A stretch of DNA of 64,000 nt, taken from assembly GCA_964304625.1 (NCBI GenBank), contig OZ199839.1, forward strand, positions 10,263,287 through 10,327,286. Direction: 5' to 3'. The notes under the pieces were generated by a model. That model did not search any database and was not told where the DNA came from. It was given only the letters and a program-made list of their open reading frames with translations. A program made the position numbers and the translations under genes. This document shows positions 6,345 through 52,000 of the stretch, piece by piece. The first letter of the stretch is position 1, and every line of letters begins with the position of its first letter. This DNA comes from Kudoa neothunni. Lineage: Eukaryota; Animalia; Cnidaria.

Positions 6345-6381
<37 letters not shown>

Positions 6382-13168: not shown

Positions 13169-15795
13169 CTATCTGATTCTTCCACCTATTGCAACCTTTT
13201 TTCGATAAATAACCATGTAATAGAACAATCCTCCAGCTACGCATAGTAGTACTCCAATAACACTCCCCCTAACAAAATCGTCATTTATTTTATATTCGGA
13301 AATATTACGATATAATTCCAGCAGTCTTTAAGCTATATTTAATATAAGCATCATATTCAAAATATTTAAATGTTACTGGTTTGAATTCACTGGAGCAATC
13401 ATATCAGGGGCTAAAATATATAATTATCGAATTTTCCTTTTGAATATTTTTCAAAGCCTACTATAAAATAAATATTATTACTAAACTCTAACATAAATAT
13501 TATTGATAATTTTCATTAGATACATATTATAGAAATATTAATTTGAATCGTTTTAATCAGGATCAAACGGCTTACCCTTTTGTGGTTCTCTGAGTAACTT
13601 TAGTTGTAGGTGAAGCTAACGTCGCAAATTAAATAAATATATTTACATTCGTTTTTACTAAAAAATATTCAATAACATTAATTAAAAAATGTTAATACCC
13701 TGTAGTTTCTTCTACTTTAACGGTCGCTATCAGAGGATTAATTTATTAGTTTCTTTAAGCGAAATACTTGGTCTGATCGTATAAATCGTTTCTCCGTGTG
13801 TATATTTCGCAGGTTTCACAATTAACTTATATGACTTGTCAGAGGAATAACCCGTGTATGTCATTGCGTTGCATTTTACTTGACAACTGCTACCAGTTTC
13901 TGTGCAAGGAGGTCCAACGTTGGTTGGCTTGGTAATATCCGTGATATCAAGTAGTGTGTTATAGCATACTATTTCAGACATCTCTCTTGCTGGATCCATA
14001 GTCGCAACAAAAGTTACTCTATCTCCATTTATTGTGTGTGTTATAGTTAATGTTGCGCCATCTAAACTAAATAACGATTTCATAATTAAACATCAATACC
14101 TGTTATCAACTCACTGATTTCCTTATCAGTTTGAAGATTATCAAACTTTATTAAAATTGAATATTCAGTACCGCGTTCCAATCTTTCAAGCTCAATTGAT
14201 TTAGAGCACATTACTCTACATGGGAATCTTCCATTACAATAGGCGTCAGTATAAAATTTTGCCCATTCGCTCTTTATTTTGACTATGCATGCGATTTTAT
14301 TTTCATTTGTAGTCATTGGTTGAAATCGCATTCTTGTGTCCAAAACTGTTATTTTTTCTTTGGGAAGCGTGATGGTATCCCCAGCTAGAGACTAAATTAA
14401 TATAACTATATAGAAAATTTATTACTCGTTTTTATATAAAATTCGGACGTTGTTTCCTCAGTGTTATCTTTTTTTGCGACGACAATTACAACGTAACCTA
14501 TCCCCGCAGTTAACGAGGAAATACTCTTGCTTTCGCAAGTGTTATCACCGTTATCAACAGAACAGTTAGCATCAGTTCTTGTTGTTACATCGGGATCGAG
14601 AGCATTTCTCGCATAAACATTACAACTGGTTGGGGATGTTGAACCATCAGAGATTTTCATACTCGAAAGGTCTAGTGTAAATCCTGTTGGTACCACGTCT
14701 GATGGTTCTATGGCATTGTTTGAAACTAAATGTATATTATACAGAATTAAATTAATTTTTAATACTTGAATAAGTTTTTATTTTGGGTGTTGTATTGGGA
14801 ATTTCACGAATAGAAACTGACGCCAATTGGTAAGTCGTCGCATCAACTTTCATCACAACCTCGGTACATAAACTTATGCATAATGTCTTACTTTCTCCAC
14901 AGGTAGATGTATATGTTTCGACGGCTGTAGATGCATCTTTTATCTTGAACTCACAAATTCTATCAGGCTTCGGGTTCAGAATAGTAATTTTAAGTTTTTG
15001 TTCTGTTTCTTTGGTTACTTTGAAAAAAATATCTGAAAATTCCGATGCATTAATTGTGTATTTATTCTGGATATGGTATACAAAATCCGGGAAAAAGTCG
15101 CCACATTTTAGAGTATATTCATGTCGATACGTCAGAAAACTTGCTTTTAGATAAGCTTGGTCTTTTGGTGTACAGGAATCTGAGTCATCGGTAGACTTGG
15201 TAATTTCGATGTCGTCAGAAGTAATTTTACATTCTGTTATAGGGCAAATCCTATTGTATGTAAATTTAACGTCATTAACGTCTTTTGATACAGTAATATC
15301 TGGGCTTAATATATAGCCTAAAATATATAACAATTTAATAAATTCTGCAATTTGAAGACTAGATTACTTTTTGGTATCAAAAAGACTTTTGTAAGGGTTG
15401 GAGTATTTTCAACCGTTTCTTTCGTTCCGGCAACCTTTACTAAAACAAATAATGTTGAAAATGAGACTTCTTCTAATTCTAAATTTTGCGCATTGCAATT
15501 TACAACACATTTATTTTGTATTTCAGTTTCAGTACAACCGAAATCTTTGTATGACAATTTGTTGTCTTCCACTTTAGATAACTGTATATAACATATATCT
15601 GTACTGGTAAATTCTTTGAGTGATATTTTAAGTTTATTTCTCTTATTTACTTCTTCCTTGATCCTAAATTCTAGATAATTGGTTTTTTGTGTATCCTGAG
15701 CACTTAATATGCCTAAAAAATATATACCAAGTTAAATAAGACCAGTTACCTATTAATAAAAGCGGAAAAACGTATATTTCAACGAATAAAGTCAT
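13169..15795 (-). CDS. Tandem surface-protein gene, copy 1 (signal peptide, 6 FN3-like Cys modules, micro-exon stalk, TM)
   Basis: ATG 15795 (MTLFVEIYVFPLLLIG-ILSAQD). ~37-50 nt GT-AG phase-1 introns join ORFs 15318-15572, 14752-15333, 14406-14696, 14086-14343 and 13730-14083. Terminal exon GSVIGVLLCVAGGLFYYMVIYRKKVAIGGRIR, TAG at 13169-13171. Confidence 0.85.
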
Positions 15796-15840
15796 AAAAA
15801 AATTATATCAGCGAATTAAATCTAGTATTTAGGCATTAGC

Positions 15841-15912
15841 GAATACGATCTATTCAATGAACAATACAACTTCCGAATACTCTTTTAAAGCTGAAATGTA
15901 TTCAAACTTTGA
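15841..15912 (-). promoter_or_regulatory. Conserved upstream motif block of the array genes (copy 1 instance)
   Basis: Near-palindrome GAATACGATCTATTC ~45-60 nt upstream of the ATG plus GTATTCAAACTT further upstream. Present in all five copies (15841, ~30254, 34510, 45236, 52045) amid diverged sequence. Confidence 0.55.
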
Positions 15913-16030
15913 CATTAATGATAGATAATTGTAAATTATGGGAATGTTTTGATATATTTCTAAAATTCTATCGGCCATAAATAACGGTATATAAGACCTC
16001 TTCTATTCGCAGAGATATACCGTCTAAATA

Positions 16031-17413
16031 TAGGGTTTTCCGAGCTTTAGTGACATCATGTCAAGCTTAATGACACGTGCGTAATTTAAGCTTATAATTA
16101 CGTTCACATTGTAAATTAATCGAATAAAAAATAATATGAGTGCGTATAAATTTAACATTACACGTTAGTTTAATATTTATGAACTTTAAAAACAGATAAT
16201 AGCGACGATTCTCAAATGAAAAACTCGAACCAAATTTAAGAGACAAACAATAAGTGACCGAGATAGGAAAATGATTGCTAATCAGTGCGAATTGGGTTAC
16301 AGCAACGCCGTCATCGCTGAAAATGTTGAAATTAAGCGACAAACTGTTGCTTCAATTGTAAAATCGTATCTTCTTGATGGGAAAGAAAAGTCATTAAAAA
16401 GGGGTGGTGACTTTTCTTCAAAACTCAATGAAGATCAAAAGTTGCGTATTAGAAGTTGGGTGGATGAGGACGCCACATTACCCTTGAGACTCTTCGTCAA
16501 AAATTATTAGACGAATGTGGCGTGAGTGTTAGCGTTAGCACAATAAATAGATGCCTTAAAGAATTCCATTATTCTTTAAAAATGCTCACCATTGTTCCTG
16601 AACGAAGAAACTCTGACGATACGCTGGAAAAACGTTTTGTGTACGCCCAAGAGTTCAATTCAAAATTGCTTGAGGCAGAAGGGCAGCAACTTTGTTTTTA
16701 TTGACGACGTTGGTTTTAATGTATCGTCATGTACAAGACAGGGTCGTTCGCTTGCTGGTACATCAGCATATGTAAACGTGAAAGCCGTCAAGTCAAGGAA
16801 CATATCCGTCATCGCAGCGATGAATAAGTATGGCATGGTGCTATATAAAATAAATCGAAGACCAGTAAATGGCGAAGATTTTAAAGAGTTCCTCATTGAG
16901 TTGGCAGATTTGTGCCGTTCTTTGGAAATTGAAGATCCATGCTTCATACTCGATAATGCAAAGATACATCATTATCGGGGACTTAGCGAAATTTTAGCAA
17001 CGTTACAACTAACGTTGATGTATCTACCTCCGTATTCACCCTTCATGAATCCAATTGAAAATGTTTTCAGCAAATGGAAAAACCATGTTGTGAGAGGACA
17101 TGCGAGAAATGAAAGCGACCTTTTAAATTTAATAGATGATGGTTTCAAAGTTATTACCACCAACGACTGCTCAAGTTATTATCGAAAAATGCTTCGATAT
17201 ATCAGCAGATGTTTGAACCGAGAAATTATTTTAGAATAAGTATAAATTATACGATAGTGTTTGGATATCTTTTTCAAATTCCCAAAATTATTATTTTTTG
17301 TTCATTCGAAATTTAAAGTAATATTTTCGTATTTTTTTACCCAATTATATAGCTATCTTAAATACCGTGTCACTAATGCTTGACATGATGTCACTAAAGC
17401 TCGGAAAACCCTA
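16031..17413 (+). mobile_element. IS630/Tc1-superfamily DD34E DNA transposon; transposase with two frameshifts
   Basis: 36-bp perfect TIRs (TAGGGTTTTCCGAGCTTTAGTGACATCATGTCAAGC) and TA duplication (16029-30, 17414-15); empty site visible upstream of copy 4 (~45420 CTAAATAAGAAAG). Transposase 16271-17239 with FVFIDD, ILDNAKIHH, LPPYSPFMNPIE and 34 residues between the second D and E. Confidence 0.95.
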
Positions 17414-17415
17414 TA

Positions 17416-20359
17416 AGAAAGCGACTTACGCACAAGACATCCGTTATCCCTGTCGGTTCGATGTGGGTCGTTTGTGATCCCACTAGAGCTATTTTTGTTT
17501 AATTCCTAGAGTTTTGATGTGACCATTTAATGAATTTGAAAATTTTTCGATAAAACTATGAGTTTTAATAGAATTTATATTAGTTTAAGCCTTTAAAGAT
17601 TAATTATACAACATTTTTTAAGACGAAAGATCATTTGCGGTAACGGTGTATTGGTGTACTTACATGCTACCAAAATTCGTTTTGATGCTTTGTATATTTT
17701 TAATCGTATTTCTCACGATTTTTTTTATTATTTTTAAAAAATTTAACCATAAATAAATTAACAAATTTTCATTCCTAACGTTTAGCAATTCTTTATACGT
17801 AATCATATGTTTGATCGCGTTTCCTTCCTGTGATCGCCGGATTATAGGTAGATAAATTCTTGTTATATGTTGATCGATAGCTTTTTTTAAAATTAATCTT
17901 TCATTACTAATTAATTAAAGATATAGTTATATTTTAGTAGAATTTATACATAAATCTGACGAGCAAAAATGTATTAAAAAATGTTGAACCTTTTGCGGAT
18001 TATCTACCTGAACGAAATAGTGGTGATGGTCCATATTAGAACTGACGATGAGTTCATATGCTTATAGACATTGGTACTCTTTTGTTTATTTTATTAATAT
18101 CAAAAAATCATATGCGGAATTCCAACTAGATGTATCAATTGCAGGGGTTACCATACAATGTATACATCAAATAGGAGGTATACCAAACTTCGAAAAAGGC
18201 GCCTGATGAATTAAGCATCTCATAAATAATGAGGAGAATTTTACAATCTATGTGTGTACGAAATAATAGGCATATGAGATTACATATTATTTTAATAATG
18301 ACAGGTAGATGCAAAACAAAATTTTATCTCACAAAGGACACGTTTTATTTGTAATAAATAGTGGGTAAAAATAGAAAGTTAGTGTATACAACATAAAGTG
18401 TGTTTTCCACAGGTCTGGAGACTTAACGAAGATTTCAGTGTACCCACTGATGATGTTGTGTTTGGGATTTTGTAACAAAATTAGATGATATTATATTTAT
18501 CTGAATTATTGCTCTCGGTGTTTATTTATTTTATTATAAACAATCGTGAAAGAATCGGCGATAAAACTATGCGCGGAAGGGTGTTTTTGAGGTGCCACAT
18601 CCTACCCCTATTACCTCTGGTATTTTCTACTATTAACGCGGATCATTCCACCTGATCATGGGAAAAAAAATATCTAATTCATTATGGACAATTAAAAGTG
18701 TGTAACCATGAAATATACATGGAACAAATAGGAAGTAACAATTTAAATCCCTAATAATATATAAACTTAAATAACCCAACTGGAGGGTTAATCCGAAGGT
18801 TTCTGAAAATATATAATTAAATTTTTCGGGAATTGAACAACCCTGCCCAATATTTAAAATTGTTAAAAAATTATCGTGAAAGAATCGGCAAAAATAAATG
18901 AAGTTTAGAGGTTAAAATCAAATAGCCGTCTCCTTTACCATTACCTTTATTAGAATAACAAATTTAAAACACAGTTTGCTGGACAGCGTGTCCACCTCCA
19001 GGCATGCGCGGAACTTTATTTTAAATCAACGATTTATATATCTTTGACTTTAAAACATTAGCTAGAATTTAATAACCAAAATGAAAATTCCATTGAAATA
19101 AAATACAAGAAATATACATATTAAAAGATTACATAAAGGATATTATATATTAAAAAACCACCATATTGGACACTCTGTCCATGCCCATGCATCGGAGGGT
19201 TAATTTATTATTTTAGCTGAAAAATAAACAGTCCCTCAATAGACGTATTGGAGTTCATAAATGTATTCCTTATTATATTGAATCTGAAAAGTAATGAAAA
19301 TTAAATCACTTTTCTTTTCCTCAAATAATTACAAATTTATCAAACTTTTTATTATGATCTGTACGTCTGTGCTAATATTGCGAGGTATTTTTCTATTGTG
19401 TGGCTTCTCCCTTGTCCCATTTGAATGCCGCAATAACTAGGTTAGGCCTATAACAATTTAGGTGTTTTTCTTATAAATTCATACAGATTTTAAATTTTAA
19501 ACTACCGAAGTTTAAAGGTTTTCTAAACAAACATCTTAATAGTTTTAAATCGATGAATTATTTTAATTTAAAATCAATTCAAAAGTCATTCATAGGAATC
19601 AGAGCATATTCCATTTATGCATTTAATGGTAAAACTATAACCAACATGTCCAAATAAAAAATATAGCTTGTTGAGTTTTTGCATAAGTTTCGTTCGTTAG
19701 ACTAAAATTTTGATTTTAATAGATTAATTTAACTCTAATTTTCGTTAACAGTATAATTTTCGACCATGTGACTTTATAATAATTTTTATTTCTGCGCTAA
19801 ATTATTGATAACGGATCTCTTTTATATCAATGTGAAATATATGAATACTTGTTTAATTCTTTGAACCAGTGTTCCCAATCTTTTTTCTATCGCACCCACT
19901 TTTTTCAAAAGTATTAATTTTGTAACTTAAACTGTTTATAACTTATAATATAACTTTCTATAACATTAAAATTTAAAAGAAATTGATATATATTTCTTGT
20001 CTTATTCAAATTAAAATTTTCACCACATGATCTAACTTAATTTATCGGTGGACCTTCAAAATTAACATATTTAGTTCTTCGATGCATCAAAAATAGCATC
20101 AAGCAAAACTCGGGGTATTTCAACCTTCATTAGGAACGATTTTCGTCTATAAGTGACTTATAAACTGAATATAAATAATCAATATTGAAAATTAATCAAT
20201 ATTACATTAGGTTAAATCAAAAAAGGAGATATATGATTCTAAATGAGGCAAGATTGAGATCAAATCATTTTAATTCTATTCGGGTGAAGGACACGTTAAA
20301 TTTTATTATTAATTTTCGTAATAATTAGTCATTATTTTTTGTTAGTTTTTATAATATTA
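17416..20359. repeat. Segmental duplication, paralogous to ~45425-48358
   Basis: Spacer upstream of copy 1 aligns with the spacer upstream of copy 4; almost identical near the gene, more diverged distally. Confidence 0.95.
19867..20359. mobile_element. Truncated copy of the hAT-type MITE at 47882-48539
   Basis: Starts CAGTGTTCCCAA after CTTTGAAC and aligns with 47882-48358 until interrupted by a Helitron end. Confidence 0.7.
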
Positions 20360-20412
20360 CTAGCGGGAATTTCCCAGCGTTGCTTGGGGAAGATTTCGCC
20401 TAGATACGGTTT
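20360..20412 (-). mobile_element. Helitron 3' terminus (hairpin plus CTAG)
   Basis: CTAGCGGGAATTTCCCAGCGTTGCTTGGG resembles the Helitron end at 39303. Alignment with the 48-kb paralogous spacer stops here. Confidence 0.6.
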
Positions 20413-20416
20413 TTAA

Positions 20417-20850
20417 CCCTTTAACGGCTAACCATGGAACTGTTACGTTAAGGCTAACCATTGGATCCCACGATCCATCGGATTAAAATTTAGGATTAAT
20501 GGATTACAAAATAATTCGATTTATTTTAAATACTCTATGAAATAGACGCAAAGAGAAATAAACAGCTCAGAAAGCAATTAATTTTTCGATTCACAATTTA
20601 TACATATAATGTTTTTTGGTTGAATGCTCATTGCGAACATATTTTGTTTCCATGTTATACAAGTTTGCTTACTTCTCCTGTCAAGAGCAAGGGGACAATA
20701 TTTGCAGCGTTTCCTCACCACGTTGGTATACATCGTTTTTAGAGACCACCTCATTATCCAACTTGTATCCAATTACTTCAAATGACCGTTTTACTGCGGG
20801 ATGGTGTGCAATCTTAAGATTAGTAAATCTTATGTCCTGGTGCTGTTTAA
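20417..20850 (-). mobile_element. piggyBac 3' remnant
   Basis: TTAA followed by CCCTTTAACGG terminus. ORF 20578-20772 encodes a degenerate C-terminal Cys-rich domain (RKRCKYCP..DRRSKQTC...CINC). Confidence 0.75.
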
Positions 20851-23347
20851 GATAGTGACTATTTGCACTACATATGCGTATGCGCGAGGATTAATGGATT
20901 TTTTTTCTTCCGTTTTTCATGCCTTAGACGCCATATCACTTAAAAAATAAAAACTAATATTGAAACTAACCATTTTTTGAGAAATGAATAAACTGAAAAA
21001 AAATGTTTTTTTCATTTTTTATATTTGACATAGTTTCTTATACATTTTTGGTCTTCCTTTGACTCTGGTTGAAGAAATATTGAATTCAAATCTTTCGGAT
21101 GAGTTTTCTTTTATTTTGTTAATTAAATATACTGTTTTTTCTTCATTCTGTTTGAGAATGTTCTCCAAATCAGTGTAAAATGATTTATATTGGTTCCCTC
21201 CAAGTGAGTTTAATTGATTTAATATTTTTTCACATAACTGCTTGTTATCGTCGAATTTGGATTTTGAATTATTTTCAGACAATTCGTGCAGGAAAATATT
21301 TGGGAAGTCAACTTTTGTGGGGCTTGTTACGGGAGATAATTCGTCGTGATTTAATGGAATTCCATAATTTGAATGTTTAGGTTCACATTCGTCACGTCGT
21401 TGGTCAGTGTCCTTGTAAAACCACCTTCCAGTACAAAGGGACTCTCCAGTTAAAAGATTAGATTTTAACATGGAAAATAAATGATTGCATGGAAGTGATA
21501 GCTGTTGATAAAATACACAATCACACTTGTATGTATTGTCATTAAGATGCGTAACCATGGCCGAATTACCCAAAGTATGTACAAAATATATGTTACGTAG
21601 TTTCCAAATAGTCAAACATTGGGAGATTCATTATTTCGTGTTTTATTTTATTGGAGGCAAACGTTGATAATTTGTTGATAACTTGTAAAGCATCTCCATC
21701 GATATTCTGGATTTTTGTTTTCATCACAGTCAATTCCCTTTTTATCAAACTATCACTACAGACGGTCTTACAATAATTTAGTATGTCATTTAATTGATTA
21801 ACGAGCGATGACTTTGATAAAAATCGTTTTAATTTTCCATGCTCTTGTTCCACCCTATTGTTGGTATTAGAGCCGAATGTTAAAACATCTAGTCGAAGAA
21901 AATGAGTCCACATAGGCTTTATGTTTAACCAATTTTTTAACAGATATGTGAAATATGGTGGATGAGTTTCAGTGATTTCATTGATTATACGGTCGAACAA
22001 CTCACTACTCAACGCGTATATAAGTTTTTTGGACAATTCTTTTAACTTTTCTTTTTTACTTTTAAGTATTGACATGGCATCTAACGTGGCTATTTTTCTC
22101 TCCATTGCTTTATAAACATGGAAGGAACATAACAATATTCTTGTATGTGGAAAGCACTCTTTTAAGGCATTAAACTCGGTTGCATCCTTATCGATAAATG
22201 CAACACGAGTTCCACTTATATTTTCCATCATTTTTACAAAAGCGGAAAATATGGAACAAGTCCTTCCATTAATGTCGACAACCGCAAAATTATAAAGCGG
22301 ATAATGCCAGTCATTGACTTTATATGTTGAGTCAATGTGTATAACTTAACTTTAGGGTATTTTTGATAAATTTTTTTCAATGTTTTTGTGGTAAAACATA
22401 TGTAATTTAGCTGATCATCGTCATCTTTACAAACATCTAACAGGATATCATCCCCATGTATATTATATAATTCATCAAAATCGTTTGAAAGTTTTGGTGA
22501 TTTAGTGGATTTATAATTTAAATTTCTAATTTTTTTGAGACTGATTGGAATGTTTAGATCGGTTTCAAGTGATAACTTTTTTATTATCACATCCCCAATT
22601 AAGATACTTCTCAAGATCCTCTTGAATGGACGTTGGTAGTTTTTGGTTATGTTTATAACATAGAATATTGAATCGTTCATGGTTGTGCATTATATTGTAC
22701 TTTGACACGTACAAATAGGTATCAGTACTCGAGATAATTATAAAAGCTTCGCAGCCATTAGCTAGCTGTGAGCTTGATCTAATTATATTTTCTCGTAGTT
22801 TTCTTTTATTTCCATGGAAGCATATATATTTTATGTAACGATATTGCAACTCGTTTCAATCAGTTGACTAATTCTTGATGCTCCATCCGACACGATAAGT
22901 ATAACCAGACTTCTATTTCTATAAGGTGTTTAAAATTGTTCTCTTTACTTATAAACCTTAATGAAATATTCAAGACATTGTTTCATTTCTGAATAAGAAT
23001 AAAAACGACATTGGAATAACTCGTGTTCCTCCATGCTTATTCCGCACGATAAGTTAACGCAGCTCGTCTTTTCGGTTGAGCAAGTTGTCAGAAAATTTCT
23101 CTTATATTATCTGTTCATATTGTTATTGTATTTTTAACTTCTAAAAAAAGCTTTAATGCTACAAATGAGAAACTAATATGTTATGAACTCAATAAATATA
23201 ATTGATGTCTGAAAACGAACATAAAAATAAATTGTATCGCATTAATATGTTTTCTTTAAGTAATATGGCGCCTAAGGCATGAAAAACGGAAGAAAAAAAT
23301 CCATTAATCCTTGCGCATACACATTTGTAGTGCAAATAGTCACTATC
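20851..23347 (-). mobile_element. Mutator-like (MULE) transposon, frameshifted transposase
   Basis: ~90-bp imperfect TIRs (GATAGTGACTATTTGCACTAC...) and 9-bp TSD GCTGTTTAA. ORF pieces give an N-terminal Cys/His domain (YICFHG..GCEAFI..HNHE), DDE core (IDKD..ILLCSFHV, TNNRVEQEH), SWIM finger (CDCVFYQQLSLPCNHL) and KGRPK. Confidence 0.95.
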
Positions 23348-23370
23348 GCTGTTTAATTAGTTCCATGGAT

Positions 23371-26851: not shown

Positions 26852-27249
26852 CAGAGATCTAACTACATCGAACCTATGGAATTAACAGTTTGCTATAAAT
26901 TTTTAGCACGTTTAAATATTTATACTCTATAAATTTGTAGTAAACAATAAACAGCTAATAAATTTTATCTTGCAATAATTTTATCAGGATGTTTTTATTC
27001 TTGATTTATTAAACTTCTTCTTCAAGTGCAGCAATAGAATTTTTATCTTCGGGAGGATTCAATAGATTAAATTTACAAATTAGAAATTTAATATATGAAT
27101 TCATATTTTTTGAATGATTAAAATTACAGAACGATTGACGTGACGGTAATTATCCTATTTAATAAAATTTCGTTTTTTAATACCTTTGATTATTCAAATT
27201 TTTGTAATTCAATGCGTCAAATTTCATTTATGACTGCAATGCCATACAA

Positions 27250-28925
27250 AATTTTAAAAAATAAACTTTAGAAGAATGCATTATAATTCAATTAACGGAT
27301 AAGGCGAAATCTAATAGTGCCATAAAATTGAATGAAATGAATTTAGAAAAATACTATATGACTATGGAATATCGTCTACAATAATTCTTTAGTTATAATA
27401 TAAAATATAGAGATATAACTAATAATAATAATAATAAAGATATGTATTTAAAAAGAAAACAAGAACGATATTTTATTTAGCGCACCACTATAAAGACCCT
27501 ATGATTTACTTAAAGAAAAATGGGTTTATTTAAACTTATATAATATTGTGTACTAAATTATTTTTTAATAAAAAATGAACTATCTGATTCTTCCACCTAT
27601 TGCAACTTTCTTTCGATAGATAACCATATAATAGAACAATCCTCCAGCTACGCATAGTAGTACTCCAATAACACTCCCCCTAACAAAATCGTCATTTATT
27701 TTATATTCGGAAATATTACGATATAATTCCAGCAGTCTTTAAGCTATATTTAATATTAGCATCATATTCAAAAAATTAAAATGTTACTGGTTTGAATTCA
27801 CTGGAGCAATAATATCAGGGGCTAAAATATATAATTATCGAGATTTCCTTTTGAATATTTTTCACAACATACTATAAAATTAATATTATCACACATTCTA
27901 ATATAAATATTATTGATAATTTTCATTAGATACATATTATAGAAATATTAATTTGAATCGTTTTAATCAGGATCAAACGGCTTACCCTTTTGTGGTTCTC
28001 CGAGTAACTTTAGTTGTAGGTGAAGCTAATGTTGTAAATTAAATGAATATATTTTACATTTGTATTTACTAAAAATATTTAACGACATTCTTTTAAAAAT
28101 TTTAATACCCTGTAGTTACTTCCTCCTTAGCAACCACTATAAGAGTAAAATGATTAATTCTTGTTTTTAAGCGAAATACTTGGTCTGATCGTATAAATCG
28201 TTTCTCCGTGTGTATATTTCGCAGGTTTCACAATTAACTTATATGACTTGTCAGGGGAATAACCCGTGTATGTCATTGCGTTGCATTTTACTTGACAACT
28301 TGTGCCAGATTCTATGCAGGGAGTTCCAACTTTGGTTGGATTGGTAACATCCGTGATATCAAATAGCGTGTTATAGCATACTATTTCAGACATCTCTCTT
28401 GCCGGATCCATGGCTGCAGCAAAAGTTACACTACCTCCATTTATTGTGTGTGTTATAGTTAATGTTGCGCCATCTACATTAAGTAACGATTGCAAAACTA
28501 AATATTAATACCTGTTATCAATTCACCAATTTCCTTGTCATTCTTAGAACTGTCAAATTTTATTAAAATTGAATATGTTGTCCCACGTTCCAATCTTTCT
28601 AGCTCAATTGATTCAGAACACATTACTCTGCACGGAAATCTTCCATTACAATAGGCATCAGTGTAGAATTTTGCCCATTCGCTCTTTATTTTGACTATGC
28701 ATGCGATTTTATCAACGTTTGTAGTCATAGGTTGGAATTGCATTCTCGTATCCAAAACTATTACTTTTTCTTTGAGAAGACTGATGTCCTCCCCAGCTAG
28801 AGAATGTTTAAAAATATTTATTATAATAATTATTACTCGTTTTTATATAAAATTCGGACGTGGTTGTCCCAGTTGTATCTTTATTTGCGACGACACTTAC
28901 TACATAAGTAGTCCCCGCCGTTAAG
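27250..28925. repeat. Near-identical block shared by copy 2 and copy 3 (~31515-33180)
   Basis: 3' flank, micro-exon region and introns nearly identical; ORFs 28154-28495 and 32410-32751 give identical peptides. Confidence 0.93.
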
Positions 28926-30209
28926 GTGGAAAAACTCTCGTTATCGCAATTATTGTCACAGTTTCCTCTAGAACATTGGAGCTCAGTTTTCGTTGATACA
29001 TCGGGATCGAGAGCATTTCTCGCATAAACATTACAACTCGTTGCAGTTGTTGTACCATCGGAAGATTTCATATTTGAGAGGTTTAATGTAAATCCTGCTT
29101 GGATCATGCTTGGTAGTTCGATGGCACTATTTGCAACTATAGGTATGTTAGACAGAATTAAATTTATTTTTAATACTCGTATATGTTTTTATTTGGGATG
29201 TTGTATTGGGAATTTCACGAATGGAAACTGACACCTGTTTGTAAGTCGTCACGTCAACTTTCATCACGACCTCCGTGCAGAGGCTTATGCATAACGTTGG
29301 GTTTGATCCACAGGTACTTACATATGTTGGATCGTCTGCAGATGCATTTCTTATCTTAAATTCACAAATTCTGTCAGGTTTTTGGTTCAGAATGGTAATT
29401 TTAGTCTTTGGCTGTACTGTTTCTATGGTAACCTTGAAAAAAATTTCTGAAAATTCCGATGCTTTCATTGTGTATTTATTCTGGATATAGTATACAAAAT
29501 CCGGGAAAAAATCGCCACATTTTAGAGTATATTCATGTCGATATGTCAAAAGACTTGCTTTAAGATTAGCTTGATCTACTGATGTACAAATTTCTGCGCT
29601 ATTAGCGGACTTGGTAATTTCAATGCCGTCAGAAGTAATTTTACATTCTGTTATAGGGCAAATCCTATTGTATGTAAATTTAACGTCACTATTTTCAGTT
29701 GAGACAGTTATATCTGGGTTTAGTATATAACCTAAAAAATATAAAAATTTAATAAGCTCTGTGATTAAATGATTAGATTACTTTTCGGTATCAAAAAGAC
29801 TTTTGTAAGTGTTGGAGTATTTTCAGCTTTATCCACCGAATCGGCAACTTTCACTAAAACAAACATCGCTGAAAATGGAGCTTCTTCTAGATCTAAATCT
29901 TGCGTACCGCAAGGAACAACACATTTATTTCCTTTCCCAGTTCCATTACAGTTAAAATCTTTGTATGACAATTTACTTTCTACAACGTCAGATAACAGTA
30001 TATGACAGTTGTCTGTACTCGTAAATCCTTTGAGTGATATTTTAAGTTTATTTCGCTTAGTGACTTCTTTCTTGATTCCAAATTCTAGATAATGTGTTTT
30101 TTGTACAACGTCAACACTTAACGCGCCTAAGAAAATTATATAAAGTTAAATAAAGGCAGCTACCTATTAATAATAGTGGGAAGGCGTATATTTTAAAGAA
30201 TAAAATCAT
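27580..30209 (-). CDS. Tandem surface-protein gene, copy 2
   Basis: ATG 30209 (MILFFKIYAFPLLLIG). Same exon/intron layout and TM exon as copy 1; ORFs 29765-29971, 29148-29549, 28808-29107, 28498-28755, 28154-28495 are its exons. Confidence 0.85.
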
Positions 30210-30483
30210 TAGAAATTATAATAAAGGATTATACCTTGTATTTAGACATTCGCGACTACGATCTATTCAATGAACAATACAGTTTCCGAACATTCTCTTA
30301 TTGCTGAAATGTATTCAAACTTAGACATTAATAATAATTAATCGAAGATAAATGAAAACTTTTGCCATATTTATATAAAAGCTATATTTATAACCGTATA
30401 TAAGACGCCATTATTTTTCTGAAATCTTGCATCCAAGTTAGAAAACGACTTTGAACAAGTCATTAGTTCAAGAAGTGTAAGTA

Positions 30484-34465: not shown

Positions 34466-34662
34466 AAAAAATTATATCAACGGATTAAATATTGTATTTA
34501 GGCATTCGCGAATACGATCTATTCAATGAACGATACAGTTTCCGAATATTCTTTTATGGCTAAAACGTATTCAAACTTTCACATTAGTGATAAGTAGTTG
34601 CATATTATGGATGCGTTTTAAAATATTTATATAATAGTGACCGTATATAAAGGTAAATAATA

Positions 34663-38009: not shown

Positions 38010-38020
38010 TTACATATATA

Positions 38021-40462: not shown

Positions 40463-40590
40463 TATTTAACATGGTAACTTTATACTTATGTAGAAGCAAC
40501 ATGTATAACGTTGGTAATATATTTGGATTTAATTCTTTATTTCAACTGACATAATATTGTATGCGTATAACGTTAATGATAAGTTATATC

Positions 40591-42573: not shown

Positions 42574-45191
42574 CTATCTGACTCTTCCACCTGTCGCAAC
42601 CTTCTTTCGATAGATAACCATATAATAGAACATTCCTCCAGCTACGCATAGTAGTACTCCAATAACACTTCCTCTAACAAAATCGTCATTTATTTTATGT
42701 TGAGAAATGTTACGATATGATTCCAGCAGTCTTTAAGCTATATTTAATATTAGAATCATATTCGAAAAATTTATATTTTACTGGTTTGAATCCACTGGAG
42801 CAATAATGTCAGGGGCTAAAAAATATAATTGTCAAATTTCCGTCTTTTATATTTTTTAAATCCTACTATAAAATATATATTATTATCAAATATCCTAATA
42901 TAGCTATTTTTAATAATTTTCATTGGATAAATATTGGAAAAACATGATTTTAATTAGTTTAATCTGAATTAAATGGCTTACCCTTTTGTGGTTCTCCGAA
43001 TAACTTTAGTTGTAGGTGAAACTATTATTGTTAATTAAATAAATATATTTGCACTCGTTTTTACTAAAAAATATTCAATAGCATAAATTAAAAAATTGCG
43101 TACCCTGTAGTTTCTTCCATCTTAGCTGTCACTATAAGAGCAAGAGAATTAATTTTTATTTTTTTAAACAAAATACTCGGTCTGATTATATAAACCGTTT
43201 TTCCATGTATATATTTCTCTGGTTTCACAATTAATTTATATGATTTTGCAGAAGAAAATCCTGAATATATCATTGCGTTGCATTTTACTTGACAACTGCC
43301 ACCAGTTTCTATGCAAGGAGTTCCAACTTTTGTTGGATTGGTAACATCCGTAATATCAAGTAATGTATTATAACATATCATCTCAGTCATATCTCTTGTT
43401 GGATCCATGGTTGCGGAAAAAGTTACACTTTCACCACTTATTTTGTGAGTTATAGTTAGTGTTGCGCCATCTAAATTAAGTATCGATCGCAGAACTAAAC
43501 ATTAATACCTGTTAACAATTCACCAATTTCCTTATCATTCTTAGAATTATCAAATTTTATCAAAATTGAATAATCTGTCCCTCGTTCCAATCTTTCTAGC
43601 TCAATTGATTCAGAGCACATTACTCTGCAAGGAAATCTTCCATTACAATAGGCATCAGTATAGAATTTCGTCCATTCGTTCTTTATTTTGACTATGCAAG
43701 CGATTTTATCAACGTTTGTAGCCATAGGTTGGAATTGCATTCTCGTATCCAAAACTCTTATATCGTCTTTCGAAAGCGTGATGTCAACCCCAGCTATTGA
43801 CAGATTTAACGTAGATATATAGAAAATTTATTACTTGTTTTTATATAAAATTCGGACGTTGTTTCTATATTATTGTCTGTTTTCGCGACGACAGTTACGA
43901 CATAAGTAGTCCCCGCAGTTAAGGTGGAAATACTCTTGCTTCCGCAAGTGCTATCATCGTTAGCATCAGTTATGATTGTTACATCGGGATTAAGGGCCTT
44001 CCTCACGTTTACGGTACAACTGGTTGCAGTTGTTGTACCATCAGAGGTTTTCATGCTTGAAACGTTTAATGTAAATCCTGTTTGTCCCATGCTTGATGGT
44101 TCTATGGCATTATTTGCAACTAAAGATAATTACACAAAATTTAATTGATTTCGTATACTCGTATATTTTTTTATTTGAAATGTTGCGTTAGGGATTTCTC
44201 GAATGTGAACTGACATCTGTTTATAAGTCACTTCAACTTTCATCACAACCTCAGTGCATAGACTTATGCACAAATCTGAATTTTCTCCACAGGAAGTTGT
44301 ATATGTTTCGTCTTCCACAGAAGCATCTTTTATCTTGAACTCACAAATTCTATCAGGTTTTGGGTTCAAAATAGTAATTTTAGTGTTTTTTTGTTCTGGT
44401 CCTTTGGTTACTTTGAAAATAATATCTGAAAATTCTGATGCTTTCATTGTGTATTTATTTTGGATATGGTATACAAAATCCGGTAAAAAATCGCCACATT
44501 TTAGAGTATATTCATGTCGATATGTCAAAAGACTTGCTTTAAGATGATCTTGATCTACTGATGTACAAATTTCTGCGCTATCAGCGGACTTGGTAATTTC
44601 AATGCCGTCAGAAGTAATTTTACATTCTGTTATAGGGCAAATCCTATTGTATGTAAATTTAACGTCATTAACGTCTTTTGATACAGTAATATCTGGGCTT
44701 AATATATAGCCTAAAATATATAACAATTTAATAAATTCTGCAATTTGAAGACTAGATTACTTTTTGGTATCAAAAAGACTTTTGTAAGGGTTGGAGTATT
44801 TTCAACCGTTTCTTTCGTTCCGGCAACCTTTACTAAAACAAATAATGTTGAAAATGAGACTTCTTCTAATTCTAAATTTTGCGCATTGCAATTTACAACA
44901 CATTTATTATCTTGTTGGGTCCCAGCAGTGCAACCGAAGTCTTTGTATGACAATTTGTTGTCTTCCACTTTAGATAACTGTATATAACATATATCTGTAC
45001 TGGTAAATTCTTTGAGTGATATTTTAAGTTTATTTCTCTTATTTACTTCTTCCTTGATCCCAAATTCTAGATAATTGGTTTTTTGTGTATCCTGAGCACT
45101 TAATGTGCCTAAAAAATGTATACCAAGTTAAATAAAATCAGCTACCTATTAATAATAGCGGAAAAACGTATATTTCAACGAATAAAGCCAT
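42574..45191 (-). CDS. Tandem surface-protein gene, copy 4
   Basis: ATG 45191 (MALFVEIYVFPLLLIG). Same architecture; tail RKKVATGGRVR; short deletion in the exon-4 Cys loop. Confidence 0.85.
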
Positions 45192-47881
45192 AAAAATTTA
45201 TATCAGCGAATGAAATCTAGTGTTTAGGCATTAGCGAATACGATCTATTCAATGAACAATACAGCTTCCGAATATTCTTTTAAAGCTGAAAGGTATTCAA
45301 ACTTTGATATTAATGATAGATAATTGTAGATTAAGGAAAAGTTTTGAAATATTTCTATAATAATCTCGACCATGAACAACGGTATATGAGACCTCTTCTA
45401 TTCGCAGAGATATACCGTCTAAATAAGAAAGCGACTTACGCACAAGACATCCGTTATCCCTGTCGGTTCGATGTGGGGTCGTTTGTGATCCCACTAGAGC
45501 TATTTTTGTTTAATTCCTAGAGTTTTGATGTGACCATTTAATGAATTTGAAAATTTTTCGATAAAACTATGAGTTTTAATAGAATTTATATTAGTTTAAG
45601 CCTTTAAAGATTAATTATACAACATTTTTTAAGACGAAAGATCATTTGCGGTAACGGTGTATTGGTGTACTTACATGCTACCAAAATTCGTTTTGATGCT
45701 TTGTATATTTTTAATCGTATTTCTCACGATTTTTTTTATTATTTTTAAAAAATTTAACCATAAATAAATTAACAAATTTTCATTCCTAACGTTTAGCAAT
45801 TCTTTATACGTAATCATATGTTTGATCGCGTTTCCTTCCTGTGATCGCCGGATTATAGGTAGATAAATTCTTGTTATATGTTGATCGATAGCTTTTTTTA
45901 AAATTAATCTTTCATTACTAATTAATTAAAGATATAGTTATATTTTAGTAGAATTTATACATAAATCTGACGAGCAAAAATGTATTAAAAAATGTTGAAC
46001 CTTTTGCGGATTATCTACCTGAACGAAATAGTGGTGATGGTCCATATTAGAACTGACGATGAGTTCATATGCTTATAGACATTGGTACTCTTTTGTTTAT
46101 TTTATTAATATCAAAAAATCATATGCGGAATTCCAACTAGATGTATCAATTGCAGGGGTTACCATACAATGTATACATCAAATAGGAGGTATACCAAACT
46201 TCGAAAAAGGTGCCTGGTGAATTAAGCATCTCATAAATAATGCGGAAAATTTTACAAGCTATGTGTATACGAAGTGATAGGCATATGAGATTACATATTA
46301 TTTTAATAGTGACAGGTAGATGCAAAACAAAATTTTATCTCACAAAGGACACGTTTTATTTGTAATAAATAGTGGGTAAAATAGAAAGTTAGTGTATACA
46401 ACATAAAGTGTGTTTTCACAGGTCTGGAGACTTAACGAAGATTTCAGTGTACCCACTGATGATGTTGTGTTTGGGATTTTGTAACAAAATTAGATGATAT
46501 TATATTTATCTGAATTATTGCTCTCGGTGTTTATTTATTTTATTATAAACAATCGTGAAAGAATCGGCGATAAAACTATGCGCGGAAGGGTGTTTTTGAG
46601 GTGCCACATCCTACCCTATTACCTCTGGTATTTTCTACTATTAACGCGGATCATTCCACCTGATCATGGGAAAAAAAATATCTAATTCATTATGGACAAT
46701 TAAAAGTGTGTAACCATGAAATATACATGGAACAAATAGGAAGTAACAATTTAAATCCTAATAATATATAAACTTAAATAACCCAACTGGAGGGTTAATC
46801 CGAAGGTTTCTGAAAATATATAATTAAATTTTTTGGGAATTGAACAACCCTGCCCAATATTTAATATTGTTAAAAAATTATCGTGAAAGAATCGGCAAAA
46901 ATAAATGAAGTTTAGAGGTTAAAATCAAATAGCCGTCTCCTTTACCATTACCTTTATTAGAATAACAAATTTAAAACACAGTTTGCTGGACAGCGTGTCC
47001 ACCTCCAGGCATGCGCGGAACTTTATTTTAAATCAACGATTTATATATCTTTGACTTTAAAACATTAGCTAGAATTTAATAACCAAAATGAAAATTCCAT
47101 TGAAATAAAATACAAGAAATATACATATTAAAAGATTACATAAAGGATATTATATATTAAAAAAACCACCATATTGGACACTCTGTCCATGCCCATGCAT
47201 CGGAGGGTTAATTTATTATTTTAGCTGAAAAAATAAAAACCATAAACAGTCCCTCAATAGACGTATTGGAGTTCATAAATGTATTCCTTATTATATTGAA
47301 TCTGAAAAGTAATGAAAATTAAATCACTTTTCTTTTCCTCAAATAATTACAAATTTATCAAACTTTTTATTATGATCTGTACGTCTGTGCTAATATTGCG
47401 AGGTATTTTTCTATTGTGTGGCTTCTCCCTTGTGTCCCATTGACTGACGCTATAACTAGGTTAGCCTATAACAATTTAGGTGTTTTCTTATAAATTCATA
47501 CAGATTTAAAATTTTAAACTACCGAATTTTAAAGGTTTTCTAAACAAACATCTTAATAGTTTAAATCGATGAATTATTTAATTTAAAATCAATTCAAAAG
47601 TCATTCATAGGAATCAGAGCATATTCCATTTATGTACTTAATGGTAAAACTATAACCATCATTCCCAAATCAAACATTATAGCTTGTTGAGTTTTTGCAT
47701 GAGTTTCGTCGTTAGACTAAAATTTTGATTTGAATAGATTAATTTAACTCTAATTTTCGTTAACATTATAATTTTTTAGCCATGTGACTTTATAATAATT
47801 TTTATTTCTGCGCTAAATTATTGATAATGGATCCCTTTATGTCAAAATGAGATATATGAATACTTGCTTAATTCTTTAAAC

Positions 47882-48539
47882 CAGTATTTCGAACCTTTTT
47901 TCTATCACTCCCACTTTTTCCTGAAAAAAAGTTCCGTGCCCACCTTTTTCAAAAGTATTAATTTAGTAACTTAAACTGTTCATAACTTTGAATAAAACTT
48001 TTTATCACATTGAAATTTAAAAGCAATTTATATATATTTCTTTTCGAATTAAAATTAAAATTTTCCCCACATGGCCTACTTAATTTTTCGGTGGACCTTC
48101 AAAAATAGCATCAAGTAAAACTCGGAGTATTTCAATCTTCATTAGAAAAGATTTTCGTCTATAAGTGACTTATAAACCAAAAATAAATAGTAAATATTGA
48201 AAATTAATCAAGATTATATTAGGTTAAATCAAAAAGGAGATATATGGTTCTAAATGAGACAAGATTGCAATCAAACCATTTTAATCCTTATCGAGTGAAG
48301 GACACGTTAAATTTTATTATTTATTTCCGTATAATTAGTCATTGTTTTTATAATATTAATTGTCGTTTATAAATAAGTGACATTGAGTTCAAAGTACGCC
48401 ATTCTGCCCAATAATCTCATTATTAACCGTGTTACACCAATACTCAGGATTTTCCGTTTCCCACCAGAACGGTTCATTAAACTTTCGAATATTTCCAAGT
48501 CTCATTAAAATATTGTCGCGCCCATGTTGGGAAATACTG
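47882..48539. mobile_element. hAT-type MITE
   Basis: TIR CAGTATTTC..AAC; 8-bp TSD CTTTAAAC. The homologous flank near 12.3 kb lacks it. Confidence 0.85.
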
Positions 48540-49365
48540 CTTTAAACAAACTTAGCTAATGTTTCCTATGAATTAAAATTTTGGTCGTACGTTCTTGCGT
48601 ACAACAGAGATCTAACTACATTGAACCTATAGGATTAACAGTTTGCCACAAATTTTTAGCACTTTTAAATATTTATAATTTATAAATTTGTAGTAAACAA
48701 TAAACAGCTAATAAATTTTATCTAGCAGTAATTTTATCGGGAAGTTTTTATTCTTGATTTATTAAATTTCTCCACGAGTGCTGCAATAGAATTTTTGTCA
48801 TCAGGAGGATTTAGTAATTAAACTTCCAAAGTAACAGATTAAATATGAAATAATATTTTTTGAACGAATAAAATTAGAGAACGATTGACTTGTCAGTAAT
48901 CCTCCTATTTAATCAAATCTCGGTGTCTCCATTTGGATAATTTTAGAAAAATTTCGTTTTTTAATACCTTTAGTTATTGAAATTTTTGTAATTCAATGCC
49001 TCATATAGATTCTTTATGGCTGAGGAATTAAACAGAATTCTAACAATTTAGCCTTAGAGGGATGCATTGTAATTTAGTGGATATGGTGCTATCAAAAAAG
49101 GCCATGAAACTTAATGAAAAGAATCTAATGAAATGCTATTCAAAACTACGGAATATCTTCTCCAATAACTTTTAAACTATAATTGAGAATACGGAGATAT
49201 AGCTTACAATATTAAACATACTTGTTTAGAGTAAAAACGAGGGCGATAATTTATTTAGCGCATCAGCATAAAGACCCTGATTTATTTAAAGAAAACTGGG
49301 TTTATTTAAAATTATCTAACAATGTTTACTAAATAATTCTTTTTATTATGTTAATATGAAATGAA

Positions 49366-52000
49366 TTATCTGATTCTTCCACCTATTGCAACCTTCTTTC
49401 GATAAATAACCATGTAATAGAACAATCCTCCAGCGACGCATAGTAGTACTCCAATAACACTCCCCCTAACAAAATCGTCATTTATTTTATATTCGGAAAT
49501 GTTACGATATAATTCCAGCAGTCTTTAAGCTATATTTAATATTAGCATCATATTCAAAAAATTAAAATGTTACTGGTTTGAATTTACTGGAGCAATAATA
49601 TCAGGGGCTAAAATATATAATTATCGAGATTTCCTTTTGAATATTCTTCACAACATACTACAAAATTAATATTATCACACATTCTAATATAAATATTATT
49701 TATGAATTTTTATTGGATAAATATTGTAAAAATAATATTTTGAATAGTCTTAATCAGGATCAAACGGCTTACCCTTTTGTGGTTCTACGTTTAACATTTG
49801 TCGTAGGTGAAGCTAACGTTGTAAATTAAATAAATATATTTGATACTTGTTTTTACTACAAAATATTTAATGCCATTCATTTAAAAATTTTAATACCCTG
49901 TAGTTACTTCCTCCTTAGCAACCACTATAAGAGTAAAATGATTAATTCTTATTTTTTTAAGCGAAATACTTGGTCTGATCGTATAAATCGTTTCTCCGTG
50001 TGTATATTTCGCAGGTTTCACAATTAACTTATATGATTTTGCAGAAGAAAATCCTGAATATATCATTGCGTTGCATTTTACTTGGCAACTGCCACCAGTT
50101 TCTATGCAAGGAGTTCCAACTTTGGTTGGATTGGTAACATCCGTAATATCAAGTAATGTATTATAACATATCATCTCAGTCATATCTCTTATCGGATCCA
50201 TGGTTGCAGAAAAAGTTACACTTACACCATTTAGTTGGTGAGTTACAGTTAGTGTTGCGCCATCTACATTAAGTAACGATTGCAAAACTAAACATTAATA
50301 CCGGTTATTAATTCATTAATTTCCACATCATTGTTAGAACTATCAAATTTTATTAAAATTGAATATTCCGTCCCTCGTTCCAATCTTTCAAGCTCAATTG
50401 ATTCAGAACACATTACTCTGCACGGAAATCTTCCATTACAATAGGCATCAGTATAGAATTTCGTCCATTCGTTCTTTATTTTGACTATGCATGCAATGTT
50501 GTCCGCATTTAAAGTCATTGGCTGAAACTTCATTCTTGTATCCAAAACTATTACTTTTTCTTTGAGAAGAGTGATGTCCTCCCCAGCTAGAGACTGATTT
50601 GATTTAGCCATATAAAAAATTTATTACTTGTTTTTATATAAAATTCTGACACTGCATCCTCAGTGGTATCTTTTATTGCAACGGCAATTATGACGTAGCT
50701 TGTCCCTGGCTTTAAAGTGGAAACACTCTCGCTGTTGCAACCGTTACCACAGTTACCACTAGAACATTTAAGTTCAGATTTTGTTTGTACATCTGGATCA
50801 AGAGCATTTCTCACGTATACGATACAGCTGGTTGCAGTTGTTGTACCATCAGAGATTTTCATACTTGAAAGGTCTAGTGTAAATCCTGTTTGTGCCATGT
50901 CCGATAGTTTAATAGCATTATTCGCAACTAAAGATATATTTGGCTGAATTTAATTAATTTTTAATACTCGTATATGTTTTTGTTTGAAATGTTGGATTAG
51001 GGATTTCACGAATGGAAACTGACACCTGTTGGTAAGTCGACGCATCAACTTTCATTACAACCTCTGTGCATAGACTTATGCACGAAGTCGTGGCTGTTCC
51101 ACAGGTAGTTACATATGTGTCACTAGTTACAGATGCCTCTTTTATCTTGAATTCACAAATTCTATCAGGCTTTGGGTTCAGAATAGTAATTTTAGTGTTT
51201 TTTTGTACTGTTTCTATGGTAACATTGAAAAAAATTTCAGAAAATTCCGATGCTTTCATTGTGTATTTATTCTGGATATAGTATACAAAATCCGGGAAAA
51301 AATCGCCACATTTTAAAGTATATTCATGTCGATATGTCAAAAGACTTGCTTCAAGATTAGCTTGATTTACTGATGTACAAGACTCTGTGCTAGGAGTAGA
51401 CTTGATAATTTCAATATCATCGGAAGTGATTTTACATTCTGTTATAGGGCAAATCATGTTGTAAGTAAATTTAACGTCACTATTTTCAGTTGAGACAGTT
51501 ATATCTGGACTCAATATATAGTCTAAAAATACATAAAATTTAGTAAGCTCTGTGATTTAACGTTTAGATTACTTTTTGGTATCAAAAGGACTTTTTTAAG
51601 TGTTGGAGCATTTAGAGCATTTTCTACCGTATCGGCAGCTTTTATTAAAATAAACGTTGTTGAAAATGAAGCTTCTTCTAATTCTATGTCTTTCTTATCA
51701 CAAGCAACAACACATTTCGCTCCTTTTTCGGTTCCAGTACAACTAAAGTCCTTGTATGTCAATCTTCTTTCTTCCACTTTAGATAACTGTATATAGCATT
51801 TAACTGTACTGGTGAATTCCTTGAGTGATATTTCAAGTTTATTTCTCTTAGTGTTTTCTTTCTTTATCCCAAATTCTAGATAATTGTTTTTTTGCACATC
51901 TTGAGTATTTAACGCGCCTAAAAAGTTTATATAAAAGTAAATAAGAGCAGTTACTTATAAATAAAAATGGGAAAAAGTATATTTTAACGAATAAAGTCAT
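49366..52000 (-). CDS. Tandem surface-protein gene, copy 5
   Basis: Exons 52000-51955 (signal peptide), 51917-51573, 51522-50968, 50927-50628, 50586-50302, 50263-49970, with phase-1 introns of 37, 50, 40, 41, 38 and 45 nt. Micro-exons 49924-49897, (49855-49847), 49812-49773, 49607-49574, 49529-49506; TM exon 49465-49366. Confidence 0.87.

Follow-up and report, generated by a model that had tools for sequence, protein, structure and literature searches.

We investigated a tandem gene array in the genome of Kudoa neothunni, a myxozoan (Cnidaria) that parasitizes the muscle of tuna. The stretch analyzed here (hereafter, the window) comprises 64,000 nucleotides of contig OZ199839.1 (positions 10,263,287 to 10,327,286, forward strand) and is AT-rich (~30% GC); coordinates below are window positions unless another location is named. 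Self-comparison of the window by BLASTN revealed five copies of a 3.1-3.6 kb unit, all on the minus strand and 80-90% identical at the nucleotide level, at approximately 12.8-16.0, 27.3-30.4, 31.5-34.7, 42.3-45.4, and 49.0-52.2 kb. The genes within these units, referred to as copies 1 to 5, occupy 13169-15795, 27580-30209, 31836-34465, 42574-45191, and 49366-52000, respectively, and encode predicted membrane proteins whose amino acid identity with one another is 73-81% overall. When the exons of copy 1 were searched against the window by TBLASTN, exactly five exon sets and no extra fragments were recovered. The distance from the array to the chromosome end is 1.7 Mb.

All five genes follow one exon plan. 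In copy 1, a signal-peptide exon (E1, 15750-15795) is followed by the module exons E2 (15368-15712), E3 (14766-15317, a double module), E4 (14426-14725), E5 (14100-14384), and E6 (13768-14061), then by three micro-exons of 28, 40, and 34 nt (13699-13726, 13576-13615, and 13377-13410) in the stalk region (13377-13726), and finally by an exon encoding the membrane span and tail, stop codon included (13169-13268). Exons E1-E6 of this copy are open over 607 amino acids, and all of its introns are GT-AG. We carried the copy-1 exon model onto copies 2-5 through a five-way alignment, from which the second micro-exon of copy 4 was taken by eye. Exons E1-E6 had the same boundaries in all five copies, with every intron GT-AG, zero stops, and a total of 603-608 amino acids, and the three micro-exons and the membrane-span/tail exon were likewise found in every copy. 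In copy 2, for example, E1 lies at 30164-30209, E6 at 28180-28473, and the membrane-span peptide at 27583-27678; in copy 4, E4 is five codons shorter. The module exons E2-E6 all run from phase 1 to phase 1, and the introns between them are 35-50 nt long. An earlier note, made from the sequence of this DNA alone, had claimed five intact, same-strand genes with a single exon structure, and this is borne out by the BLASTN comparison, the projected exon model, and the TBLASTN search; the limits that it gave for the array, 13169 and 52000, are the last base of the copy 1 stop codon and the A of the copy 5 ATG.

The encoded proteins start with a hydrophobic N-terminus, MTLFVEIYVFPLLLIG, that resembles a signal peptide; E1 of copy 1 encodes MTLFVEIYVFPLLLI(G), which is hydrophobic and signal-peptide-like. 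Six modules follow, spread over E2 (114 amino acids), E3 (183, double), E4 (99), E5 (94), and E6 (97). The last exon encodes the membrane span GSVIGVLLCVAGGLFYYMVIY and then the tail RKKVAIGGRIR, directly before the stop; span and tail are 100% identical in four copies and 91% identical in copy 4, and the 11-residue tail is basic and contains no tyrosine. A C...C-x5-8-C-x3-C pattern is present in E2, the second half of E3, E5, and E6, whereas E4 of some copies lacks the last cysteine. Cysteine makes up 3.6-3.9% of the residues; CXXC motifs are absent, and CXXXC motifs number four or five per protein. These features support a prediction of type I membrane topology, with an anchor that hardly varies beneath a variable ectodomain. 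Of the architecture claimed earlier, the signal peptide, the six modules, the near-invariant membrane span, and the 11-residue tail all stand, whereas the stalk, described as rich in threonine and serine, is short and only moderately threonine-rich. The cysteine pattern was also found, with a spacing of x5-8 rather than the x6-9 first given and with the exception in E4 noted above.

The motifs LERGTEYSI, LTAGTTYVV, and LKPGTSYVI, which had been read as fibronectin type III (FN3)-type, are present exactly as quoted, and the FN3 relationship that they hinted at is real for two of the modules. We gathered 54 versions of E5 from this genome; their alignment contains six invariant columns, namely four cysteines, one leucine, and one tyrosine (C32, C49, C55, C59, L68, and Y74 in copy 1). 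An AlphaFold2 model built on this alignment is a beta-sandwich (predicted local distance difference test score, pLDDT, 88; predicted template modelling score 0.77). Among the top 50 structures superposed on it by VIA-align, nearly all were FN3 domains (Z 7.6-9.3; root-mean-square deviation 2.2-3.5 Å over 75-90 of 94 residues), including those of ROS1, contactins, fibronectin, titin, LAR, sDscam, and NCAM, and FN3 also led the Foldseek matches in the PDB and the ESM Atlas (template modelling scores 0.5-0.7). Independently of the model, the E5 profile matched solved FN3 domains of titin, Dscam, fibronectin, and tenascin at E-values of 4e-14 to 4e-5 (titin, 4e-14; Dscam, 1e-7; fibronectin, 5e-7). 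Pfam fn3 (PF00041) was detected at E < 1 in 38 of the 54 E5 members, with a best value of 4.2e-6, and the window copy was without a match; ten single-exon translations from copies 1 and 5 gave nothing above noise in Pfam. E4 and E5 are homologous by hhalign (probability 92%, E 5.7e-7), and the E4 profile matches fibronectin at E 5e-7. By profile and predicted structure, E5 is a divergent, cysteine-braced FN3 domain, and E4, judged by its sequence, is another.

The other modules are less easily placed. When E6, E2, and E3 were aligned to E5 by hhalign, the cysteines fell in register, but the scores were weak (E 0.007-0.03, probability < 6%), and profile searches of the PDB with these three gave no significant match. 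Structure prediction, which the earlier note had proposed for each module, covered E5 and E3; it identified E5 as FN3 through AlphaFold2 and Foldseek, whereas the model of E3 was poor and unmatched (best VIA-align Z 4.6; ESM Atlas feature search scores of 0.87 or below). The remaining four modules are beta-rich, with a fold that is unproven.

We then searched for relatives of the array across the genome, which comprises 40,260,978 bases in four contigs of 17.15, 12.04, and 11.05 Mb and 18,219 bases. Counting paralogs by the membrane-span/tail exon, as had been proposed, gave exactly 14 matches, with five in the array, eight at 2.58-2.645 Mb of the same chromosome, and one on another chromosome; a search with E6 returned the same 14 loci. 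One of the 14 members, in the 2.6-Mb cluster (2619727-2620874 of the same chromosome), carries stops inside E5 and E6 and is likely a pseudogene. The exon plan is common to the seven paralog loci examined in that cluster. The E5 profile reached much further, with at least 150 loci in the genome, all scored at E ≤ 4e-21 (first-look candidates numbered 729). These matches are clustered and lie over all three chromosomes, for instance at ~8.0-8.2 Mb of the chromosome that bears the array, and a handful of the matches among the 150 scored loci contain stops. Judging from these matches, the five genes are part of a 14-gene subfamily, delimited by its near-identical membrane-span/tail exon, within a superfamily of at least 150 loci. 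The module order was the same in the six distant members that we read. Some distant members have four modules in one open frame of 443-445 amino acids, indicating that some branches of the superfamily have lost the introns separating module exons.

Outside this genome, relatives were scarce. The E3 profile, searched against 1.84 billion representative proteins, gave 22 matches, none of which was a named relative. Nineteen of these were short open reading frames (ORFs), and the seven that we looked up were unnamed singletons from metagenome or run assemblies in ENA or Logan; where aligned, these seven were 20-27% identical to the window copies, and they were nearer to other subfamilies. The other three, bacterial proteins with Big_5/Big_12 immunoglobulin (Ig)-like repeats, were weak matches, which we took as a generic Ig-like resemblance rather than kinship. 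Full-text literature searches combining Kudoa or myxozoa with fibronectin type III returned nothing relevant, and the K. neothunni assembly paper contains neither "surface" nor "gene family" (PMC12239612). The family is apparently undescribed in the sources searched. This agrees with the earlier observation of no recognizable homolog, in that no named family emerged from Pfam, the 1.84 billion proteins, or the literature searched. The same note had taken the array for an analogous, possibly undescribed system; no description was found, but the array is not self-contained, being part of the 14-gene subfamily and of the larger set of loci.

Divergence among the five copies is strongly mosaic when followed segment by segment, and near-identical tracts agree with this. 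Between the end of E4 and the 3' flank (~1.65 kb), the divergence of copies 2 and 3 is at most 0.5%, compared with 16-26% in segments upstream of that tract. The 5' part of copy 4 (E1-E2, intron 2, and the start of E3) is nearly identical to that of copy 1, and the two are identical over 303 nt covering the end of E2, intron 2, and the start of E3. Copies 3 and 5 have a 172-nt tract with 0.6% difference (end of E3, intron 3, and first part of E4), whereas copies 4 and 5 have 177 nt of E6 in common, and copies 2 and 4 have 231 nt of E3 in common. Since the near-identical tracts join different pairs of copies, every copy is pieced together from tracts moved by gene conversion or recombination, and the sequence exchange that had been claimed among the copies extends across all five. 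Upstream of copy 1, a 2.9-kb segment (17413-20339) is duplicated at 45423-48349 with 94% identity, indicating that the unit duplicated between copies 1 and 4 extended ~3 kb upstream of the genes.

The ratio of nonsynonymous to synonymous substitution rates (dN/dS) was 0.16-0.70 for every exon and every pair having nonsynonymous differences, and introns had diverged about as much as exons. Mean amino acid identity was 71% in E2, 78% in E3, 69% in E4 (the most variable exon), 84% in E5, and 83% in E6, compared with 91-100% in the span and tail; the membrane-proximal exons are clearly more conserved than E2-E4. In windows of 12 codons, dN/dS ranged from 0 in the framework to ~1-1.5 in short patches located before, around, and between the second and third cysteines of E2, E3, and E4. 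Selection is purifying on average but not uniform, and positive selection is not demonstrated. Uniform purifying selection, which the earlier note had named as evidence against its own reading, is not what these ratios show.

The stalk presents a splicing puzzle. Each of its three micro-exons has a length of 3n+1 and runs from phase 1 to phase 2, while E6 ends in phase 1 and the last exon requires phase 2. We searched for the micro-exons by pattern in a set of twelve paralogs drawn from two clusters; the protein-level identity of the module exons in this set is 44-81%. Each micro-exon was located in 10-12 of the 12 paralogs and, where located, had the exact length, AG...GTA flanks, and a single open frame; the encoded peptides are conserved (TVKVEETT / GESVTDTT; SPTTKVTQRTTK / PSAKEVTRATTN; PDMIAPVNSN / PDVIAKADSN). 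Splicing of all three in series was considered and rejected because every combination of canonical sites meets stops. The canonical donors match the local consensus well (AAG|GTAAA and AGG|GTAAG), which favors mutually exclusive use, and we lean slightly toward a model in which each mRNA would carry one micro-exon. A doubtful alternative is that the donors of the first two micro-exons may lie one base upstream (N|GGTA), and some other mode of micro-exon splicing is unlikely. In this cnidarian parasite, the triple of 3n+1 micro-exons reflects either mutually exclusive splicing or an unusual choice of splice sites.

A 24-nt motif, GTTCRTTGAATAGATCGTAKTCRC, lies ~45-65 nt before the ATG of each gene (15839-15862, 30252-30275, 34508-34531, 45234-45257, and 52043-52066, minus strand). 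It is better conserved than the flank around it and has exactly six matches in the genome, namely the five genes and, with one mismatch, their closest paralog on the same chromosome; the reversed control gave zero. The motif is a candidate shared promoter or 5' untranslated region element.

Transposase genes lie between the copies, in keeping with the earlier description of the array as rich in transposable elements. Just upstream of copy 1, a Tc1/mariner-type transposase occupies 16271-17239 on the plus strand (DDE_3, E 9.5e-27; HTH_29 below the Pfam cut-off). A MULE/SWIM-type transposase is split into several open frames at 21019-22849 on the minus strand, and this MULE has five further near-full-length copies elsewhere in the genome (84-91% identity) in addition to partial matches. 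Inside the duplicated 17413-20339 segment are short interspersed repeats at 18366-18945 (~570 nt) and 19866-20339 (~450 nt), with at least ~14 and ~25 matches elsewhere in the genome, respectively, at 77-85% identity; related 340-nt matches lie at 11986-12325 and 47524-47865. These interspersed repeats are probably non-autonomous transposon relics. The window also encodes, at 4593-10151 (plus strand), a Sin3-type co-repressor in a single 1852-residue open frame (Sin3a_C, Sin3_corepress, and PAH domains), apparently without introns and with long low-complexity stretches rich in asparagine, proline, and serine. Elsewhere in the assembly, the first 10 kb of the fourth contig (18.2 kb) contains a divergent cox1-like ORF with the motif DTYFVVAHFH, whereas a tRNA scan and an Rfam search of the same 10 kb found no tRNA or rRNA genes and no match. 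This contig fits the unusual mitochondrial genomes reported for Kudoa, which are 15.9-19.4 kb long (bioRxiv 10.64898/2026.02.11.705288). The published K. neothunni genome has 30.4% GC, 49-bp introns, three chromosome-scale scaffolds, and a circular mitochondrial contig (PMC12239612).

By fold and topology, the proteins are nearest to metazoan FN3-repeat adhesion receptors. Like the FN3-repeat type I proteins DSCAM, contactin, NCAM, and the LAR-type phosphatases (PF00041), they combine the fold found in E5 with type I topology, and they resemble metazoan FN3 proteins in having phase 1-1 module exons and in the profile similarity of E4 and E5, which includes the leucine and tyrosine of the tyrosine corner. 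In contrast to these receptors, they have no Ig domains and, with an 11-residue tail, no recognizable cytoplasmic domain; three or four cysteines are conserved per module, unlike in ordinary FN3 domains. Furthermore, the window copies are too divergent for individual detection by Pfam fn3, four modules are unassigned, and at least 150 loci are present in a 40-Mb genome. By lifestyle and layout, the nearest analogs are families such as SRS of Toxoplasma and 6-Cys (s48/45) of Plasmodium. These are parasite-specific surface families built of tandem, disulfide-braced beta-sandwich modules, often encoded in tandem gene arrays and mostly anchored by glycosylphosphatidylinositol; they serve attachment and immune modulation, and their expression is stage-specific rather than switching. 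The fold family differs here, with no SRS or 6-Cys chain among the structural matches listed; the anchor of the Kudoa proteins is a membrane span, and a sequence relation to either family was not found.

Two other comparisons had been suggested in the earlier note. With the variant-specific surface proteins (VSPs) of Giardia and the VSP-like genes reported in Sphaerospora molnari, the Kudoa proteins share a signal peptide, an ectodomain that varies, a single membrane span, and a conserved basic tail of very few residues, and all are encoded by multigene families of parasites. The tail of Giardia VSPs is CRGKA. For S. molnari, VSPs were defined by more than 10% cysteine, many CXXC motifs, and the tail motif [KR]X[KR]XK[KR] (bioRxiv 10.64898/2026.02.11.705288). 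The proteins described here, with their low cysteine content, zero CXXC, FN3-like modules, and a tail that corresponds to neither that motif nor CRGKA, fail as VSP kin. Kinship with the Alr allorecognition genes of Hydractinia fails on domain type and tail, although both families belong to the cnidarian lineage and consist of clustered type I genes with variable distal domains and exchange between neighbors. Alr ectodomains are Ig-like (V-set/I-set like), and many Alr tails are of the immunoreceptor tyrosine-based activation or inhibition motif (ITAM/ITIM) type, whereas the modules here are FN3-like and the tail has no tyrosine; Pfam scans of the exons of copies 1 and 5 and of the 54 E5 members detected no Ig families.

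The explanation that we consider probable is that the array belongs to an FN3-like surface family diversified by duplication and exchange, which may provide an adhesion or recognition repertoire. According to this explanation, the five genes arose by recent tandem duplication and encode a lineage-specific type I membrane protein composed of a signal peptide, six beta-rich, cysteine-braced modules, a short linker, one membrane span, and a basic 11-residue tail. The array grows by duplication of 3-6 kb units, with transposons inserting between copies, and tracts of 120-1650 nt are copied repeatedly between paralogs by gene conversion or unequal crossing-over. Purifying selection acts on the anchor, on the splice sites, and on the framework of the beta-sandwich; segments around and between the second and third cysteines of the modules, mostly in membrane-distal exons, change at an approximately neutral rate. 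We infer that the proteins stand on the parasite cell surface with their distal modules outward, where the variable patches may serve as binding surfaces in a binding or recognition role; they could bind material of the host, in the muscle fibre or the invertebrate host, or else adjacent cells of the parasite itself.

Several points weigh against this explanation. For E2, E6, and the two halves of E3, which make up four modules out of six, no significant match to FN3 or to any other domain was obtained, and the AlphaFold2 model of E3, built on 17 sequences, has a pLDDT of only 55. The signal peptide and the membrane span were called from the sequence, without a dedicated predictor. Because canonical sites do not allow the linker exons to be spliced in series, the mature protein given here is provisional in that region. 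Diversifying selection and relaxed constraint would explain patch dN/dS values near or above 1 equally well, and the 12-codon windows were picked after the data had been seen, on small counts and with recombination ignored.

Alternatively, the family could serve programmed antigenic variation, as the VSPs of Giardia and the var/rif genes of Plasmodium do, with one or a few members expressed per parasite or plasmodium and conversion-aided switching that escapes fish antibodies. The size of the repertoire (at least 150 loci), the conserved anchor beneath variable distal modules, the abundance of gene-conversion mosaics, the patches at dN/dS of ~1-1.5, and the restriction of the upstream motif to the five genes and their closest paralog would all suit such a system, and antigenic variation has been claimed, along with VSP-like families, in another myxozoan, S. 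molnari (bioRxiv 10.64898/2026.02.11.705288). However, dN/dS at the exon level is only 0.16-0.70, the array at 1.7 Mb from the chromosome end is not subtelomeric, and few pseudogenes were noted (one in the subfamily and the handful of stop-containing matches among the 150 scored loci). In addition, tandem receptor families in general often show gene conversion and carry variable loops. Kudoa plasmodia grow inside muscle fibres, a site in which little pressure from antibodies is to be expected. The genus is described as both histozoic and intracellular (bioRxiv 10.64898/2026.02.11.705288). We regard programmed antigenic variation as unlikely. A more specific form of the idea, a variant surface coat for immune evasion in which one or a few genes would be expressed, conversion would diversify them, and exclusive or non-canonically spliced micro-exons would vary the stalk, strikes us as improbable. 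If it were true, the superfamily would be the long-sought molecular basis of myxozoan immune evasion, in a metazoan parasite.

Adhesion among the parasite's own cells deserves about as much weight as antigenic variation, that is, rather little. Here, the paralogs would bind and sort cells during development (cell-in-cell stages and spore-forming cells), each paralog having its own stage or type of cell, and would replace adhesion molecules lost in myxozoans. The classic adhesion molecules of metazoans include FN3-repeat type I proteins, and the FN3 domains of DSCAM, contactin, NCAM, and titin are among the top structural matches; the framework and anchor are under purifying selection, and the gene repertoire of Kudoa is much reduced (PMC12239612). 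Conversely, an 11-residue tail leaves little room for cytoskeletal or signaling links, and at least 150 genes with variable distal patches exceed what simple adhesion seems to need. Allorecognition, in which variable ectodomains would tell self from non-self between co-infecting clones as in the Alr system of Hydractinia, is very unlikely: the organism is a cnidarian and its genes are tandem, exchange sequence, and vary in their distal domains, but the modules are of the FN3 and not the Ig V/I-set type, an ITAM/ITIM-like tyrosine is absent from the tail, and no relative beyond the family was matched in the profile search. The presence of Tc1/mariner and MULE elements between the copies in a genome of which ~45% is repeats (PMC12239612), together with the proposal that MULEs drive gene-family diversification in myxozoans (bioRxiv 10.64898/2026.02.11.705288), could also suggest that the duplicates are non-functional or in decay, not yet degraded, and were swept along with active transposons, as in pack-MULE-like capture. 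Yet all five copies keep ten exons open with GT-AG intact, dN/dS in the framework falls well short of 1 and reaches 0 in some 12-codon windows, the lengths and frames of the micro-exons are the same in two clusters whose exons differ by ~30-55% in protein sequence, and only one subfamily member contains stops. This pattern of conservation largely excludes decay as junk duplicates, which we rate as the least probable of the readings. In terms of function, we rank an adhesion or recognition repertoire above antigenic variation and own-cell adhesion, which are roughly level, and these above allorecognition.

The array is a minor branch of a very large superfamily of FN3-like surface proteins in a myxozoan, and this superfamily is apparently undescribed. 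The published K. neothunni annotation lists 5,316 proteins and was derived from protein hints, with very few RNA reads mapping (PMC12239612); an annotation built in this way has probably missed orphan families such as this one. In that case, the 150 or more genes for surface proteins in this superfamily would make up a sizeable and overlooked share of the parasite's coding capacity. With five intact copies and mapped conversion tracts, the array offers a clean and small study case. Myxozoans are economically important parasites of fish, and the superfamily is the obvious place to seek host-interaction, diagnostic, or vaccine targets.

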